Below, in pieces: positions 52,403 to 62,800 of a DNA stretch of 64,000 nt. The stretch is taken from positions 83,609-147,608 of the forward strand of contig PDIP01000018.1 of assembly GCA_002811645.1 (NCBI GenBank). The letters run 5' to 3'. Below the pieces are notes generated by a model. It was not told the origin of the DNA and did not search any database. It was given only the letters and a program-made list of their open reading frames with translations. Position 1 is the stretch's first letter. The number at the start of each line of letters is the position of its first letter. The translations under genes and the position numbers were made by a program. This stretch comes from Corallochytrium limacisporum Hawaii (Eukaryota > Protista > Pluriformea).

Positions 52403-52597
52403 ATGAAGTTCTTGAAAGATGTCACTTTTGTTGTCATTTGTATTGGCAGCATGGTTGAAGCTATGCATGTCAAGGATGTCGAGGGTTTGCAGACCGAGTG
52501 CGGTTATATCGGTGACCCCTGCCAAGTTATAGACGGCAAGGATTCTTGCTGTCCGGGGTTTGGTTGCTGGGGTGGGTCGTGCAAGACCATAGGTTAA
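52403..52597 (+). CDS. Small secreted knottin (ICK, conotoxin-like framework) peptide
   Basis: 64 aa: signal-like MKFLKDVTFVVICIGSMVEA, a short spacer, C-x6-C-x8-CC-x4-C-x4-C and a terminal Gly. A-rich leader before the ATG. Confidence 0.75.
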   Translation: MKFLKDVTFVVICIGSMVEAMHVKDVEGLQTECGYIGDPCQVIDGKDSCCPGFGCWGGSCKTIG

Positions 52598-52776: not shown

Positions 52777-54381
52777 CTAATTCATTTCATCTGAAATCTG
52801 AGATGAGGCGTGAGGAGTGGCGGTACAGTTGTCGACTGGGTGAATGTACCAGCGATTCTTGTACCCATCTGCTGGTTCCAAGGTGTAGCAGTCGTCGTAA
52901 TCAAGTAAAGATAATATATGGCTTTCACTCTCAAAGAGTTCAAGAGGATCTTCAGTTGTTCGACGTTTGCTGGGGCAACTCAGAAATTGGGGAGGAAAGG
53001 ACTCATGTAGAGTCTGATCACACATGAGCTCAGGCACACTGTTGAGGTCACAGGTCCAAATCTCCGCTGCAGCTACCTTGCCGGCAACAGAATTCGCTCT
53101 GCCGGCCACACTTGGAGAGATAAGGGTATCCAGGAAAGTATCCGACCACTCCGCACCAATCAAAATCATAGCCATTTTGGCCACATCTCTGATCTGGCCG
53201 GGGGTAGCGAGTTGGCTTTCGAGGATGAGCTCTGGGACCGTGATGTTAGCGAGGTTTGGAATTCCATTGCCCTGGATCCAGGTCTGGATACCGGTCTTCT
53301 CGGCATCATAGACCACATCACCAGTAATGTAGATGTCCGCTATAGTCTGTTGTGTCCAGACCGTAATGTTCACGACAGCTTCAGGAAGAACTGTGGGAGT
53401 GGAAGCAAACGTTACTGTCTCCGTGACTGTCTTGGTTTCGGAGACTCCTGTAGTGAGCGCTTCGGTAACAGTTGTTGACAGGCTGTCCTTGATGGTCGTA
53501 GAAATCTCATCTGTAAGGCCACCAAGGCTAATACCAGCTTTGTCGCTAACGTCAACTTCGGTAGAGACTGAAGTGGTACTGGAGACTGACTGTTGAGAGG
53601 AAACCGTTGTTGATTCAGTAACCGATTTCGAGTAATCTGCATTGAATGACAAGCATAGAGCATCACCATTACTTTCAACATGTGTGTCCGGTGCTGATTG
53701 TGTCTCAGAGGTCTGAATGTCCCAAACGCGTGTCAAGAGGTAGTCCACTGGCTGTTGACTGTAGGCTGAATTGACACTTGGCCCGATTATCGGAACACAC
53801 TGCACGGCGCCCATTATGGCTTCCAGCACTATAAAGGCTTGGTTTTGTGGGAAGCCGACTGCCCAGGGCTTGAACGATGAATCCTGGGCATTGGGGTCAC
53901 AGTACGCTTGCGAAGTATCCGAAGGACTCAAATCTTGCAGAGCATTCCACCATGCGTCCCACATGTCAGCATTCTCATCTGTTCGATTTATCTGGTAGGG
54001 TGACGCGAGAATTGGTCCTGTGAGTGCGTTGAGTTTCCAAAGCACGGAGCTCCAGGGATCTATATCACCGCTTGTAGAATTTAAAACCTGAAAGTTTCCC
54101 ACCCGGTCTAACATGTATTCCTCAAAATCAGTTCCCTGGTCAACAATGAACTGGGAAAGAGGACGCATGTCAGCTAAGCCATTCATGATCAGGAAGAAGT
54201 CGAAGTCTTGCGTTACCTGATTATTTCCATCGTCGTCCCAAATGGAGGCATCTGCAGTCATTTCCAGTGTTGGACAAAAAGGTTCAGGTAAGACTTCTCT
54301 CCTGGACGACATTGACGCTGCTGCAACCAGCGCGTATCCGCCGATCAACAGGAAGGCACAGGTCGTTTGAATGTTGGGCAT
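52777..54381 (-). CDS. Secreted aerolysin/ETX-MTX2-like beta-pore-forming protein (putative)
   Basis: Signal peptide from ATG 54381, followed by SSRR. Ser/Thr-rich strands flank a hairpin (YSKSVTESTTV...AGISLGGL...SETKTVTETVTF), followed by TVLP..VVNITV...ITGDVVY. SKRR lies 60 aa from the C-terminus. Confidence 0.7.
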   Translation of the reverse strand: MPNIQTTCAFLLIGGYALVAAASMSSRREVLPEPFCPTLEMTADASIWDDDGNNQVTQDFDFFLIMNGLADMRPLSQFIVDQGTDFEEYMLDRVGNFQVLNSTSGDIDPWSSVLWKLNALTGPILASPYQINRTDENADMWDAWWNALQDLSPSDTSQAYCDPNAQDSSFKPWAVGFPQNQAFIVLEAIMGAVQCVPIIGPSVNSAYSQQPVDYLLTRVWDIQTSETQSAPDTHVESNGDALCLSFNADYSKSVTESTTVSSQQSVSSTTSVSTEVDVSDKAGISLGGLTDEISTTIKDSLSTTVTEALTTGVSETKTVTETVTFASTPTVLPEAVVNITVWTQQTIADIYITGDVVYDAEKTGIQTWIQGNGIPNLANITVPELILESQLATPGQIRDVAKMAMILIGAEWSDTFLDTLISPSVAGRANSVAGKVAAAEIWTCDLNSVPELMCDQTLHESFPPQFLSCPSKRRTTEDPLELFESESHILSLLDYDDCYTLEPADGYKNRWYIHPVDNCTATPHASSQISDEMN

Positions 54382-57300
54382 GATATTGATTCTTGCCTTG
54401 TTCAGATGCAGCACGGCAACGCAAGTCAGGTGCTTGAACACTGAATGATATGTTCTGTTTGGATCCAGAATGTTACAAGGGGGTTCAGACCGATTGAGAT
54501 CACAGGTGATAACAGATCGGTCTCGTTTCGAATACCCTTAGGGGCGATCTGACTGTGCACAGCACCACCATCATTGAGCAGCAGGACCGTGGAGGCATGG
54601 CGGAGCGGAATGCAGGGCGGGACCATCTTAGGGTTCACCGAGAAGGGGGGGGTTCTCTCTCTCCCCGCTTTCTCTTCTGGGAGCCTCACCGGGGAGAGGG
54701 GGAACCGAGACGGATCGATCAAAGTCGCGAGCGTGCTACGAGCCGCGCGCGGCTCTAATGGAAATTAATTTCATGCTTTGACTGGTGTGCGCAAGAAGGC
54801 CTACCTCTCGGTATCCCCAAGGCGCGACGAAATATTTTGCACTGGCACACTACGTCACCGTTGCTGACAGTACGGAGAGCCGGCTTCCCCCGGTGACCAG
54901 TGTTTCCTACGTTGATTGGCTGTGTTTGGGACGAGGACATCGTACCAACTTCTTCCAAGTTTTCCAAACTTGAAAACTCCGCGCGAAGGCAAGGGGGTAC
55001 CTTCAGAGCCACTTGCGCGCAGCCAGGGATGTTCGCGAGTGCGCTGGGACAAGGATTTGTACGAGAGAGCGATTACCATACCTATCCATACCAGAGCATG
55101 ATGTAGCTGTACAATCCCAATATAGCAGGAAAATTCCAACGACGGCCGGTGCCAGCGTTGGACCGTTGCGCTACCATTTGTATCGTGGAATGAAGTGGCT
55201 TGCCGATGTACCTGGCGACGTCTCTGTGCCTTGAAGTGTCTCCGATTGGCATGCACATGGTCTTTTTCGACAAGGGGAAATCAACATCTGAGTCATTTTA
55301 CTGATTTTTGTCATGGACGCCAGTTGAATGCTCTTGAATAGATTGTGTCGGAACTGAGCACAGCTTGCCAGGGGCTTAACATCCTAGGACTTTCCGTACG
55401 AACGTGATACCGCGGCCTGGGATTACGTTTGTTCTGGCTCGAGGAGGTCTTCCCAACATGCTATGGTGAGGGACTCATATCTCGTTTAGCAGTCGACGGT
55501 GTCGTGGACTGTATCCACTATGGCGTCGGCATGCCTCACTGTCGTGATGATGCCTACCATAGGAACATGAAGACGAGCGTCTTCCCTGGCCGGGGCCATC
55601 GTATCGATCCAAGGAGCTGGGATGTTATTCCTACAGCTTAAGGAATAGGTCTCACATTCCAACTGAGACTTCCGCTTCACGTATTGCATCCCGTCCACAA
55701 CACAAGAATTGGAAGACGCTCCTTAGGCCAGAATGAACGGAGCTTGCGAGGAAATTTGCCATTGAGTACTACCAAATGGGTTTGGGGGTGCTGGACAGTT
55801 CAATCGTATTTGTTTACAACAAATGCGCAGCCGTCCATGGCCCAATGGGAGTTTGCTTCTATGATTGTGTCTAATTGCTTGCATGTCTTTGGAATAGGGG
55901 CGAAATAGCATTCCAGTGCAGTTCGGAGCAACCTTGGCTCTAAATGTCATAGGACTGTTTGCTCGCTGTCGACCAACCCAGCTCCTGTCCCGGGACTCAT
56001 GGAGATTCCTGATTGAAGAGATCTACGCAACCCTGCCTTGATACGACAAAGAATGCGGTGACAGATGCGCATGACTCAGGGAGACTCCGTTGCAAATTCT
56101 CAGAGAGATCCACAGATTGGTGCGTTCTGATCGCAATGTGCGAGATGTCGTTGACCTCCAGCTCGGTCGGAGGCTTAGCGTTCGGGGTTTGGTCTCTGGA
56201 AGAATAGTTCCACTCATTAGCGTTTGCTTTGGAATGTCTGAATACAGTATGTTCTCGCTGCCCAGTAATTGTGGATCTCACATGCACAGTTTACTTTTGT
56301 GGTAAGTGCTATTCTTCTTGAGATAAACTATTCATACACTGCCAAACCTTCCGAGTGAACGTTCACTGGATGTTTCATGACCACTCCCTGTACTGTTCCA
56401 TTTCTTTGTTTCGTTGGCACTTACAGCTGTGAGAGATGAGAGGGTTGTCAGCCAAACTGTTGCAGTACAGAATTGCCTACAAATCTGCCGCACTTTCGAC
56501 CCTTCCGCAAATTGAGTTCTTGGTACATTCGATGCACATACCAGAGCAAGCCTGATTATCCCCCTAGGTACCCAACCCAACATTGATGTATGTCGAAACA
56601 AGGACAGAATCTTCGTTCAGATCCTGCCCGGGTTTTGGTGTCCATCAATGCTGCCCTTCGGTAGGGTTTAGATAGAACCTTTCCCCCCGTTTCATATGGC
56701 CTCATTGTTAACCCGCCTTTTTCCCCGCGTCCGACACACTGCTGGGCCATTGTTTCTCTTTCTTACTCTGTGGTATTCATAATGATGTAGAACGATGCAA
56801 GAGCATGATGGATGGTCGGTATGTGGCATACCTCCAAGGAATTCACCACACCTCGGCCTCTTACTTTCTATCACTCTCTGTCCAGTAGATCTCCTTTACG
56901 CAAAACACATTTTCAAATGTCCTGTGACAGCGCCGCCCTGGGCTGGTCCACCGAAGGGCAAAACCCTCTTTGGTCGTGGCGGAACCCCATGTGACCAACG
57001 GCAAACACTGAGTCCAACAGCGCTAACCTTTGGCATTGTTGGCATTGACTTCCACACCCCCCCGGAGGGGGGGGGGCCCTGGGGTCCTTCTCCCGTCTCC
57101 CCGGCCTCTCATCTAGAACGATATCACATACACACGCGAAAATGTGATGACGCTAAATCGACTGGGTGCGCTTGGTTCTATTGATTGTGCGTTGGGACAT
57201 GCCATACACTCTAGAATCATCCAAACCTCTTACTTACTTCCACCGGTCGGTACTATGAGACTCCAGTGTGCCCAGCAGGACCAGAGTGCCCGTCCTAAGG

Positions 57301-57637
57301 CGCACACAATGTCCCGAAATGGGAACATAACCTGACCTCCCAGATCCCGCTAGGCGGGCTACTGAGAAAGCCCCTGAGCCTGCTTAAGCCAATTCGATCT
57401 GCCCGTCGAAAAAAAAGAGTACAAAAGCACCCAACAAAAAAAAAAGAAAAAAAATCAAAAATCAAAAACTGGGAGAAAAGGAACAGAGGGCACTAATCAC
57501 ACAAATAGAAAAAAGAAAAAGATAAGGAATTTTGTGCAGTGTCACACTCTTAGGGCGGGCGAGCTTGCCCTGTTTTGGAAGGCAGAGCACACAGCCACAA
57601 ACAAAAAACAAAAAATGCAAAGGGAAAAGGAGGCGTT

Positions 57638-57638
<1 letters not shown>

Positions 57639-57676
<38 letters not shown>
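57639..57676. repeat. (GT)19 microsatellite followed by (GGGTT)-type repeats
   Basis: Seen directly. Confidence 0.95.
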
Positions 57677-57678
<2 letters not shown>

Positions 57679-59510
57679 TTGGGTTGGGTTGGGTGGTTGG
57701 TGTTGTTTTTGTTTTCTCTTTGCTTTTTATCCTCCTTCTTTTCCATTGATTTTGACAGGTTCGGTGTGTTTGGCTCCTTTCTTCTTTTTTTTTTCCGGTT
57801 CGGATGTTTACGCCAATGTTTCGAAAAAATTCCAGCAGGTCAGAGATCGAGAGAACACGTAGATCAATATATCGACCATCGCATATTGCTAATGGTGTCG
57901 GAGTCGAACGGGCCGGGCCTTTGAGCAAATTGCACGAGATCAGCAAAGGGTTCTCATTTCACTTTTGTATGGTTGACCAGTTGTGATACCCGGGACAGGT
58001 AGGACGGAGTGGGGAGAATAAATGGCTTCTGTTGCGATACGAGTTCAAACAACTTTTGTTTGTTTTCGGAAGAGATGTGGGCGAGAAGACACTACACCGA
58101 ATTGGTCGTTCAAAAGATGCGCATTGATCTCGGGAAAGTGTCGGGGATCAAAGCTAGTGCAGTGCATGATTCTGCAACAATGTTACACCACTCCGGACCT
58201 AGCCTACATCTTTCGGTTGGCATGATAATGCAGTTTGGAGACCATGCCATGGAAAGAGAATGCACGAGAGTTAAATGCCTGCTGGAATTGGAAAGAGAAG
58301 AAGATAAGAGCAAGGGAAGAAGATAAGAGCCATCTGCCTTACAGCCATCTTACAGATGCCCGTGTCCCATGGTCCCAACGATCTCTCAGTAGACACAGGT
58401 GCCTGGGAACCTAGATAGGAGGCCGTCAGTGGCAAAATAGCCCGATGATGACGCACGGATGATGCGCTGTGCAGATGCTGCGCATCAAATGGTACACAGA
58501 TGGAGCGCAGATTGTGCACAGTGCAGCCGAGAGAAGTTCATGTCCCAAGACACCTCATGGCTATGAAACAGAGTTGATATTCTTGGCCGGCTGTCCAGCC
58601 CAAAAGGCTCAGCCACTTGCCTCTTCCTTGGCCCCAACTCCCTTCTCGTCCGCCGCTCGCATGTTGTGTACCTGAAAGTGCTCCACTGCAAAATCTATCA
58701 TCACATTCCCGGCCCAACTCCACTGCCTCCCCGGCAACCCCGGCGGCCCTTACTCCCTTCCCTTTTTTCTTCCCTTCTCTGCCTCCCCCCCCTCCCAAAA
58801 CTCCCCCCCCACCGCTAGCCTCGCAAAGACCGGGGCCGGGAAGTGGTGGGGTATGGATTCCGGCTTTTACTATCCCTCCGGAGAGTAAGACCACCCCCTC
58901 CTCCCCCCCCCCCCTTGGGGGGGGGGACTCCTTTGTTCGGGTGGGGGCTTGGCCCCTGAAATGCTCCAGTTTACACGTTTCAGTACTTAATGTACGATGG
59001 TGTGTGGTCCACTGGTCCACCGAATAGTTCTCGCCTTGGGGGGAGGGGGAGGGACCGGGAGGTTTGGGGTTGCAGGAATCTTGAGAACACAGGCAAAGGG
59101 CTCCGGAAGAGTTTTGCAGGAAGGCAGGATCCGGGATCCGGATTCCGCCCGAGATGAACGAGGGTTTGCTCAAAACAGGCATTTTTACAAAGGGACCGTC
59201 TGAACTATGAGAACGATTTTGGCATCTTGGGGACATATATTCCCTTTCTGAACCACCCAAAGGTGTGTACGAGCATCTGGATGGCCTACAAGATTATGGC
59301 AGGTGCAGACCGTCGTTGGGAGGTGTGTAGCAAAAGATTCGTCCTCATTGCGTATCCTACCCGAGGAACCCACTCTGGGACCCTTTCCCCCCCCCCCTTT
59401 TGGAGAGGGGAAAGGGCCACCTGGCGGGCATTTTGTTACGCTGTCTTGGATCCCATCTATTGATGCTACTATGCACACAATACCGTTCAACACATCGACT
59501 GTGCAGTCAG

Positions 59511-59691
59511 GTAAAGAGAAAACACCAGTATTTGGTCGGAATAGATTCTATTAGCCCCATTGTTCTCGGAATGGAACGAGTTGCTGGCATTGGCAAGTCA
59601 GCCAATCATTTCCTTATTCCCTTCGACATGGAAAAGGTGATGTTGGATTTGATTGTGCAAAATTGAGATCAGAACTGACTCTATTGTACAG
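59511..59691 (+). other. Putative leader intron of Cys-rich gene (181 nt)
   Basis: CAG|GTAAAG, CTGAC (59675-59679) and TACAG|G. Confidence 0.5.
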
Positions 59692-59845
59692 GTTCTTCAG
59701 ATACAAGCTTTTGGAAGAATGATCAGTAGGCTCGAGTGGAGTACAGCAAATTACAAACCTGTGATTTGATCAGGGGTACCAAATCTCTACATTTACACTT
59801 GGATCAGAAGTTCCCAGGATCCTACATTGATTCAAAGTTCAAACC

Positions 59846-62800
59846 ATGGGTGGCGACTGTTTGGCAGAATGGCAGCCCTGCACGACGCACCGTGACTGTT
59901 GTGGATACGAGCGTTACACCTTCCCTACCACTCTCTGTGCCTATCCGCCGCCGACAGACAACTGGGCCGTTGGTGTCGATGTGAGTGTTGCCGAGCCTGT
60001 GCTGCAATGTATTCCAAATGCGTCGAAGAAAGACAAACCTTGTGAACATGGTGTTGACTGTGTTAGCCGTCGTTTGACGACAAGTTTGTACTGTGATGTG
60101 GATACTTGTCGTGAAATACCTCCCCAGCAGTGTTCGCTTGTTTGCGAAAAGCCGTACGTTCCAGTGCTGGATGAAGTCTGGTGCCAGGATGCACACGGAC
60201 GCCCTCGCCGGTGTACGGACCATGACTGCTGTATTTTACCACCAACCTGTGAAAACTTCCATTGCGATACTGGGTACAAACCAGATCCTATTGCTGTATG
60301 CGCTGTGGACGGATGCTCTCCGGAAATCTGCTGTAATCCGACGTGCTCAGAAGAAGGTGGCTCGTGTTCCGGGGACGAAGACTGTTGTGGAGACAAGTTG
60401 GAATGCCTGTTGATACGCAGGGGTGCTGATGAGGGAGTTTGTCTCCCTAAGTGCTCCAAGGATGAGGAAGAGTGCTTCAGTGATGACCAGTGCTGCGGAG
60501 AAAGTGTCTGCAACCCAGTACCGCACCCACCAAAGAAGCGTCGCGATCACATACCAAGCAAATGTGGTCCACTCGGGCCGCTCTGTGTAGAGGGTAGTCC
60601 CTGTGATGAGCCTGGGGATTGCTGTGACGAAGCACCGTACTGTGTTCTTCCTGCTACTACTTTTCTACGTCGTGAACCCGTCCAAACACCGACAGGCGTC
60701 CCAGCTCCGCCACCCGGTTCTTCCGGAGAGTGTAGAAAAGACCCGCCTTGTAAGAATGAGAAGGAGGGGTGTTTTGAGGATGCAGACTGCTGCGATAATG
60801 GAGCAATGTACTGCAATACTAACGGTCCCGTCCCTGTCTCTTCCGATCGCCGTGACGCTCCTCCTGGGATCTGCGAACCTGTCCCTGTCTGCAAGACCGA
60901 AGGCTTTGACTGCTACGATGATAAGGACTGTTGTGGTCATTGTGACTTCTTCCGACTTAACCGTCGTGAGGGCACTACCGGCACGTCACCAGCACCCGGC
61001 ATTTGCGTATCCGACTGCAAGCCGCAAGGTGGACTCTGTGTAAGAAATGGAGATTGTTGCGACGACTTTGTGTGCATCGATATTACGACGTCAACTATAA
61101 CCGGGACACCAACTATAACCACAGGCACCGGGATCGAAACATGTCAACCCGGCTGCTTGAGCCTGGGCACCGAGTGCCATGGTGTGGTACCTTGCTGTGG
61201 TGACCTGGTCTGCGAAGAGGAACGGCCAACGCCAGTGCGCCGCACCGTTGAAAGGCGAGTATGCACAACACCCTGCAGTGATGAGCATGTGGAGTGCGAC
61301 GGCGATGAAAATTGCTGTGGTGATCTAGTCTGCCGACAGAATGCGATCGATAAACGCCGTGATGGCTATACCGGCACTTGTGAGCCGCTGTGTTCTGCTA
61401 AGTACCTTGGTTGTGATGACGACAATGACTGTTGCGAGAGCCTGAGGTGCGATTACTCTGTGGACATCTCTGTGGACATCAGCCGTCGGCGCATAGGGGG
61501 CATCTGCTTAGAAGAGTGCAAGGATTATGACCAGTCCTGCTACCTTGACGAAGAGTGTTGCGAAAGTTTTGTCTGCGAAGGTGGTGGTGTCCTGCCCCCG
61601 CTCCGTCGCGATACAGAACGGCGAAACGACTTCGAAGGCAAATGCAAACCAGCCTGCAGCCTTGAAGGTTGCAATGAGGATGGTGACTGTTGTGAAGGTT
61701 TGGTCTGTGGTGAATCCCCCCGGGACACCAAACGCCGTGATGGTACCACTGGTAGCTGCATCCCCGAGTGCAAAGACGAGGAACAGGAATGCTACGAAGA
61801 CGACGACTGCTGTGGTGATGGTCTATCCTGTGAGCCACCGTCTCCCAAACGGAGAAGCACGGAACCGGGAGTTTGCAAGCCTACTCGACCCCCGTGCCAG
61901 GAACTCGATGACGGATGTGATAGAGACGAAGATTGCTGCGACAGGAGGCTATTCTGCGACACGCTGACCCAGCCTCGCCGTGACATTGACGATTGGCTAG
62001 GCATCTGCAGGCCGAGACCAGAGTGCAAAGAGGCAGATGAATCGTGTTACTGGGATGGTGACTGTTGTCATGCGGACCTGTACTGCGAAGGTGGTAGCGG
62101 AAACACTACGACCACAATCACTGTCACGGTCTTCGGCGGGGAACCGCCTGGTCTTTGCAAACCCCGCTGTCGAAGAGGCAAAGAAACCTGCGATGACGAC
62201 GATGACTGTTGTACAGACAACGGTCGGCTCACCTGCCAAGAAGTCAGAGATGAAAACCGCCGTGAGGTAGGGAAAGTTTGTCTTCCACCGCCCGTCTGTG
62301 TTGAAGATTTCCAGGAATGTCAATCTGGTGATCAGTGTTGCAATAGTACCTCGTCTTGCCTTCCTTCGAGACCACCTGCACGCCGTGATACGTGGGTGGG
62401 CACTTGCACTCCTGATTGTAGAGATGAGTTAGTACCATGTGCATCGCACGAAGAATGTTGTCCAGATCTCTACTGCGATCCCGCAGCGTCCGACCCTCGA
62501 CGAGTGGTAGTCAAGGGTGTCTGTCGCAAGTGTGACGCAGGTTTCAGATGGGATGGACAAGAATGCGTCTGTGTCAATTTTGATGATTGTGGTGTCTGTA
62601 ACGGCGACGGAACTACATGTAAGTGCCATACTGGCTACCACTGGGATGGCCAAGACTGTGTTCCTGATACGTGCTGTGAAGTTGCTTGCGATATCCTTCC
62701 GTGGCGACGAGACTCCGACTGTGAACAATGCAAGGACGACGCCGGAAGGGAGCGGCCTTGCACATCCGATGACTGTTGTGACTCTCCTCCAGACTACCTA

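Follow-up and report, generated by a model that had tools for sequence, protein, structure and literature searches.

A lineage-restricted protein of Corallochytrium limacisporum with 17 knottin-like units and a recurrent Arg-Arg pair inside the six-cysteine frame: a candidate substrate for convertase nicking

The window analysed here is a stretch of 64,000 nucleotides from Corallochytrium limacisporum Hawaii (assembly GCA_002811645.1, contig PDIP01000018.1, positions 83,609 to 147,608 of the forward strand), and unless another locus is named all coordinates below are positions within it. In this window a single uninterrupted open frame of 1311 codons (59846-63781, forward strand) encodes a cysteine-rich protein of 1311 residues with 182 Cys, with 266 Asp+Glu as against 142 Lys+Arg, and without an N-terminal hydrophobic leader. 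The start ATG lies in a strong initiation context (caaaccATGG), and all 182 cysteines are in register across the intact frame. Residues 167-893 (60344-62524) form an array of 17 contiguous six-cysteine units joined by linkers of 3-6 residues. This array had been noticed in an earlier reading of the sequence (hereafter the original prediction), and an independent parse reproduces it with two small deviations in the first loop. We found an Arg-Arg pair (RR) in the last loop of 15 of the 17 units, each in the residue context that had been described, and the role of this pair is the subject of the present analysis.

The 17 units, which we call type A, share the frame C-x6-C-x5-CC-x(2-7)-C-x(11-29)-C; the two deviations are the first loops of unit 3 (C-x5-C) and unit 11 (C-x4-C). 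Most of the linkers contain Pro. When the units are aligned with MAFFT the six cysteines (C1 to C6) are the only invariant columns, and the units are 32-53% identical to the first of them.

Units 1 to 5 occupy positions 60344-60442, 60452-60565, 60584-60733, 60749-60874 and 60890-61006, with last loops of 11, 17, 29, 19 and 20 residues and RR codons at 60416-60421, 60539-60544 (within KKRR), 60668-60673, 60848-60853 and 60962-60967, respectively. Unit 6 (61016-61144) is one of two exceptions, having a Thr-rich last loop of 22 residues without RR; the other is unit 14 (62024-62158), with a Thr-rich loop of 23 residues, and both had been singled out as such in the original prediction. Two RR pairs, three residues apart, are found in unit 7 (61154-61264; RR codons 61238-61243 and 61253-61258) and again in unit 10 (61517-61645; 61604-61609 and 61619-61624). 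Between these lie unit 8 (61274-61381; KRRD, with RR codons 61355-61360) and unit 9 (61391-61507; RRR, codons 61484-61492), and after them unit 11 (61655-61759; KRRD, 61733-61738), unit 12 (61769-61876; KRRS, 61850-61855) and unit 13 (61895-62008; 61976-61981), the last of which has an extra RR between C4 and C5. Unit 15 (62168-62281; 62258-62263) has an extra RR immediately after C1, and units 16 (62297-62407; 62381-62386) and 17 (62417-62524; 62498-62503) complete the array.

We shuffled the last loops 200,000 times, keeping the composition of each loop, and at most 12 loops carried RR in any one shuffle, compared with the 15 observed. In 10 of the 15 units RR lies exactly six residues before C6, following the pattern RR-[DE]-x3-G-x-C. 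The codons used for the pair vary among units (CGC, CGT, CGA, CGG, AGG and AGA); thus, what is conserved is the pair of amino acids, which does not reflect recently copied DNA.

Outside the array, the same open frame contains further cysteine-rich units. Near its start, a related six-cysteine unit without RR (unit 0, an eighteenth related unit; 59858-60010, C-x6-C-x5-CC-x10-C-x24-C) is followed, still within the cysteine-rich N-terminal region, by a unit of a second type (type-B-like; 60182-60265, C-x9-C-x4-CC-x5-C-x4-C) in which RR immediately precedes the second cysteine. Downstream of the array, an unclassified cysteine-rich segment (62531-62674) leads to the type-B repeats: unit 1 (62729-62821, C-x9-C-x4-CC-x8-C-x4-C), unit 2 (62870-62962) and a truncated unit 3 (63017-63082) that runs into the first of three C-terminal modules of 10 cysteines. 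Three later repeats had been reported to carry RR, and we located these pairs in the linkers: two flank type-B unit 1 (62705-62710 and 62837-62842) and the third follows unit 2 (62975-62980), that is, between units. All three belong to an RR-[D/E/G] motif. As this motif recurs in a different structural setting, a linear motif fits better than a brace of the type-A fold. RR-[Asp/Glu] is a short linear motif under purifying selection.

A search for RNA data listed no run shown to contain this stretch. Four short contigs, from two runs that carry the same species label and whose kind we guessed to be RNA, match positions 61355-62583 at 90-95% identity; none of the four covers the 5' end. Over 61355-62583 they differ from the window by about 7% and contain one in-frame insertion of six bases behind 61743. 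The 40 differences listed (a further 11 fall outside the list) affect 36 codons, 23 of them non-synonymously and 13 synonymously, and none of those listed hits a Cys or RR codon. This pattern is suggestive of a fast-evolving protein with a conserved frame. An adjoining transcript piece (63816-63900) is identical, and the locus between 61355 and 62583 is either hypervariable or represented by a divergent allele or strain.

To place RR in three dimensions we used an AlphaFold2 (AF2) model of units 8 and 9, built from an alignment of eight non-overlapping unit pairs. A three-unit sliding alignment was dropped because MAFFT matched its overlapping identical parts and not the repeats in register. 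The model has a mean predicted local distance difference test score (pLDDT) of 75.9, with 83-89 in the cores, and in both units a hairpin is formed by the strands that bear the unit's own C5 and C6. Values drop below 50 in two places only, residues 28-30 and 68-74, and both are loop segments that have RR at their end. The pair sits, according to this model, on a low-confidence and probably flexible segment where the C5-C6 hairpin loop rejoins the C6 strand, and not in the core.

A Foldseek search with the model yielded no match at E <= 0.001 (all matches had E >= 0.013), and the list consists almost entirely of inhibitor cystine knot (ICK) toxins together with colipase, Dickkopf and MIT1. On realignment (VIA), single units reached Z scores of 3-4.8, the best being psalmotoxin (Z 4.8, with 1.8 A over 37 of its 38 residues); when both units were aligned, colipase and Dickkopf scored 5-6.3, with procolipase at 6.3. 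This fold evidence comprises a predicted model and modest matches on a very small domain. All 17 units also show the order C-C-CC-C-C with short loops by which knottins are recognised. These results support, at the level of prediction, a knottin-like fold for the type-A units, as the original prediction had proposed from the cysteine framework; the model of adjacent units that it suggested shows knottin-like beads for units 8 and 9.

The register bears on what a cut at RR would produce. The original prediction had offered two outcomes, a chain of nicked knots held together by disulfides or a set of free peptides with a permuted cysteine frame. The second requires that the sequence repeat be out of register with the folded domain, as in the potato type II proteinase-inhibitor precursors (PMC2259423): each domain would then consist of C6 of one unit and C1-C5 of the next (C-x3-C-x6-C-x5-CC-x4-C), RR would fall between domains, and about 15 different six-cysteine peptides would be released. 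From C6 to the next C1 the linkers are indeed very short (3-6 residues, of an x-Pro-x type), the RR loops are long and variable as true inter-domain linkers are, and cysteine counting allows a clasp formed by the two ends. However, AF2 pairs the C5 and C6 strands within the same unit in both modelled units, so that the predicted domain keeps C6 with C1-C5 of its own unit, and single units superpose on solved ICK toxins. Furthermore, the array begins at a C1 and finishes at a C6, and related units in the same genome and in fungi (see below) stand alone between long Pro- or Thr-rich linkers, which indicates that the canonical unit folds on its own. We consider an off-register arrangement highly improbable, and the release of permuted peptides is disfavoured.

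Genome-wide comparisons were made against the assembly of 24 Mb in 286 contigs. In it we found one locus for a convertase of the furin/kexin type, with a Peptidase_S8 and a P domain, a Ser/Thr-rich stalk, a transmembrane segment and an acidic tail; its E values are 4e-126 against furin and 3e-117 against kexin. The pro-region of this convertase itself contains an RRR run. A complex prediction for convertase residues 100-570 with units 8 and 9, run without controls, scored 0.00 and carries no weight on binding in either direction.

If the pairing is the canonical ICK one, the chain would still be held by disulfides after a cut in the C5-C6 loop, as in the first outcome; since the predicted fold places C6 in the same bead as C1-C5, such a cut would release nothing. 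The best reading of the RR pair, to which we assign a probability of roughly 0.4, is that it marks the place where a convertase nicks each knot into two disulfide-held chains. Under this reading the gene would encode a large extracellular protein of the beads-on-a-string kind, with some 20 small disulfide beads of the knottin kind, of which 17 belong to a single type, and with its three C-terminal 10-cysteine modules serving to anchor or target it to an extracellular glycan. The most likely role of RR-[Asp/Glu] would be that of a dibasic processing site for the single furin/kexin-type convertase of the genome, and each cut bead would be a two-chain knot held by disulfides, as in the spider toxin CsTx-13 or, in principle, proinsulin. 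Cuts at the three RR pairs in the linkers of the type-B repeats could detach the array from the anchor at the C terminus.

Proinsulin offers a comparison, since its dibasic sites also lie within a fold held by disulfides. Its Lys-Arg ahead of the A chain lies five residues before a Cys, and a distance of six residues between RR and C6 is therefore nothing unusual in steric terms. Proinsulin differs in having a single domain of unrelated fold from which the C-peptide is excised as a rule, whereas two sites are present here only in units 7 and 10.

We looked for homologues in which conservation of the pair could be followed. A word-indexed search with residues 167-893 found none, and when 1.84 billion representatives were searched exhaustively with a profile, 24 weak matches emerged, the best at 49 bits and most over C1-C5 only. 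A metagenome scan with the array found no match, and a feature search of the ESM Atlas reached 0.81, under the usable score. Pfam searches with the whole protein and with its parts found no family for the array, curated knottin/toxin families included; a TrAA12 match to the protein was rejected as a chance result of low complexity. The gene is real and lineage-restricted.

Elsewhere in the genome the type-A frame occurs at a single locus, with short loops and no RR. This locus (L024:1219-4662, reverse strand), broken by an assembly gap, encodes a paralogous surface protein that has a signal peptide, numerous knottin units with short loops, linkers of poly-Pro, a transmembrane segment and a cytoplasmic tail.

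Among the weak profile matches, P0019 from Zymoseptoria tritici aligned over the whole unit, including the part with RR. Its gene model of 240 residues covers just the end of a far longer open frame, of 1672 codons or more (L020:708-5723, forward strand), whose product is rich in Ser and Thr and contains 11 knottin units. In the last seven of these 11 the C5-C6 loop includes KR or RR. The model from IPO323 (P0025) has a signal peptide and a precomputed match to PF07740; it is named 'polycystin' by its source and is apparently partly out of frame. In Fulvia fulva, a PA14-domain protein with a signal peptide (P0026) has three knottin units, two of which carry KR or RKR in the same loop. When aligned on C6, the fungal units have in common an x-R-N a few residues before G-[TS]-C, and units in which x is non-basic have a KR a short way upstream of it.

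These secreted, mucin-like or PA14-containing wall or adhesin-like proteins of Zymoseptoria and Fulvia resemble the Corallochytrium array in their frame (C-x6-C-x5-CC-x3/4-C-loop-C), in the dibasic KR or RR a few residues before G-[TS]-C and in their Thr-rich stretches. They differ in having long Ser/Thr-rich linkers in place of linkers of 3-6 residues and in carrying the pair in some units only. A profile-profile comparison of the fungal and Corallochytrium units gave a probability of 95%, over C1-C5 only, and common descent of the two is plausible on this sequence evidence. The recurrence of a dibasic pair in the same loop, with mixing of Lys and Arg in the fungi, raises the odds that it is a processing site. 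In the literature searched we found no publication on the processing of these fungal proteins.

Several observations weigh against convertase nicking. All 15 sites are RR and none is KR, they lack the P4 Arg of furin sites and a basic residue at P4 is present in only one, so that they do not match the classical furin type. At the ATG there is no signal peptide, and scans for a leader exon over 54.5-59.8 kb (5.4 kb upstream) gave no convincing candidate, only an artefact encoded by (GT)n and weak candidates. The searches described above detected no homologue of the array that would allow conservation of RR to be followed directly. The fixed spacing of six residues between RR and C6 fits a structural or binding role as well, and so does the conserved R-N/D of the fungal units, four of which have a single Arg at that position. 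As for the properties expected of Kex2-type precursors, a convertase is present in the organism, but a signal peptide was not found and the sites of the 17 type-A units are not between units.

The main rival, which we hold only slightly less probable than nicking, is that RR-[D/E] is an uncut binding or structural motif of the hairpin and that the protein remains a single chain. The pair could form an Arg-Arg-acid turn that braces the C6 strand; as a basic patch it could pair with the strongly acidic beads next to it; or an extracellular polymer or a receptor could make contact there. Such a motif is favoured by the exclusive use of Arg-Arg and by the fixed spacing to C6 in 10 of the 15 units, as well as by the conserved Gly two residues before C6, the strongly acidic character of every type-A unit (5-12 Asp+Glu versus 1-8 Lys+Arg) and the single Arg aligned to the pair in the four fungal units. 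It also gains from the fact that cleavage is so far a reading of the sequence. Against it, RR lies in or beside the part of the model with the lowest confidence, and it occurs in the linkers of another repeat type as well; the fungal loops mix KR, RR and RKR, and the four single-Arg fungal units keep a KR a few residues upstream.

A stronger form of the nicking hypothesis would have a cut at nearly every RR. The backbone of the resulting fibre would alternate between peptide segments and single disulfide bridges, with about 15 nicked knots in series, and reduction would yield about 16 defined fragments; through the fungal KR and RR pairs, the design would be common across opisthokonts. We regard this extended version as unlikely. 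The RR observation is solid, and the key step of cleavage is one that sequence alone does not allow us to infer.

The original prediction had held that no example of either outcome was described. This is overstated, as partial precedents exist and the premise of an unprecedented system fails. The ICK toxins CsTx-8, -12 and -13 of the spider Cupiennius salei have a loop that is opened by a specific protease to give heterodimeric two-chain peptides (PMC7232441). There, as proposed here, a knottin loop near the C-terminal hairpin is opened post-translationally, and the candidate site in Corallochytrium is on a probably flexible loop between two cysteines of one bead. The spider toxins are, however, single small venom peptides and not a 17-unit chain, their loop is closed by an extra disulfide, and the spider protease recognises PQM or inverted PQM and not RR; moreover, cleavage is experimental for the toxins and inferred for the array.

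In potato type II precursors the domains are off-register to the sequence repeats, linkers are removed by proteolysis and a two-chain domain is present (PMC2259423). The six-repeat precursor of Nicotiana alata shares with the present protein its disulfide-rich tandem repeats and the placement of processing sites, here candidate ones, inside the sequence repeat (PMC2259423), but it has another fold (8 Cys) and no sequence relation, its EEKKN linkers are removed by plant proteases, and the register predicted here is canonical. A survey of fungal Kex2-processed repeat proteins reports sites between units only (PMC6339444). Proteins such as alpha-factor and Ustilago Rep1 (PMC6339444) resemble the array in their tandem repeats, in having one dibasic site per repeat and in the presence of a convertase in the genome, and the type-B RR pairs of Corallochytrium are similarly placed between units. 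Unlike the array, which has 15 sites inside the six-cysteine frame, RR only and no leader found, they have between-unit sites, mostly KR, release free peptides and carry signal peptides. DkTx, which appears among the weak structure matches, also has more than one knottin domain in a single chain; it is a venom peptide with two domains as against 17, and is without dibasic sites in the loop. Literature searches combining knottin with Kex2, and Corallochytrium with cysteine-rich, returned nothing relevant, and in the literature searched we found no description of a long series of knots each with a site inside its frame.

The three C-terminal modules bear on where the protein is located. Each copy has 58 residues and 10 cysteines, and together they span 63080-63772 on Gly/Asp tethers. 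Copy 1 (63080-63253) is followed by an Asp/Gly-rich tether with a (GD)n run (63254-63343), copy 2 (63344-63517; pLDDT 77.6 in its AF2 model) by a Gly/Asp/Asn-rich tether (63518-63598), and copy 3 (63599-63772) lies two residues from the end of the protein, which has no hydrophobic tail. The module has no Pfam match, no counterpart in the PDB by Foldseek, VIA-wide or sequence search, and none in the ESM Atlas. It is found at 20 or more further loci in the genome, in 1-4 copies on tethers rich in Gly/Asp/Asn or in Thr, and is joined there to GH114, Agd3-type deacetylases, purple acid phosphatase and unassigned enzymes; clear signal peptides are present on several of these. From this company on secreted enzymes we infer an extracellular module that binds or anchors to glycan, and the protein as a whole would, judged by its sequence, be extracellular, associated with matrix or wall and anchored to glycan.

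Several genes of a galactosaminogalactan-type toolkit are carried by the genome, including a GH114 hydrolase (L027) and Agd3-like deacetylases (L028, L032). The presence of GH114 and Agd3-like genes in a holozoan genome is a hint of a GalNAc (N-acetylgalactosamine)-rich exopolysaccharide.

The missing leader leads to the least probable of the explanations considered, that the gene does not encode a working secreted protein, either because it has lost its leader and is decaying or because the product is an intracellular cysteine-rich protein, with RR a relic of an earlier function. The strong context of the ATG and the 5.4 kb without long open frames upstream of it are consistent with this, and the ratio of non-synonymous to synonymous changes among the differences listed is high (23 to 13). 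A frame of 1311 codons has nevertheless remained intact with every cysteine in register, the listed differences spare all Cys and RR codons, and the C-terminal modules are shared with enzymes that bear signal peptides. The scan that failed to find a leader exon also misses the leader of the convertase gene, and is therefore weak negative evidence; leader exons appear to be split off elsewhere in this genome, in the convertase gene and in the GH114 gene, whose leader is apparently on a separate exon.

The upstream region that lacks long open frames (54441-59845) is unusually long for a compact genome of 24 Mb. It contains a (GT)n microsatellite at about 57640-57680 and, at about 58600-59100, low-complexity runs rich in G/C. 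About 7 kb upstream of the gene, an open frame of 64 residues (52403-52597, forward strand) has a clear signal peptide and a knottin frame of its own (C-x6-C-x8-CC-x4-C-x4-C); no second copy of this small gene or of its leader was found in the genome. Next to it lies a gene on the reverse strand (52780-54381) for a protein of 534 residues with a signal peptide, which belongs to a family of at least 60 loci in the genome and has no Pfam match and no sequence match in the PDB.

What the locus means for the biology of Corallochytrium depends on the fate of the pair, although the 10-cysteine module is in either case a candidate for a new glycan-binding or anchoring domain. If RR stays uncut, what has been found is an Arg-Arg-acid motif conserved on the knottin hairpins of an orphan surface protein, which would be of moderate interest. 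If it is cut, the protein would be the first multi-unit chain to owe its continuity to one disulfide per bead, that is, an extracellular polymer that could be severed by reduction, and it would be found in a close unicellular relative of animals that possesses a convertase of the animal type. The protein would then be a natural substrate for this convertase, in a lineage for which the literature searched describes none, and attention would turn to the corresponding dibasic pairs inside the loops of wall- or adhesin-like proteins from two fungal plant pathogens.

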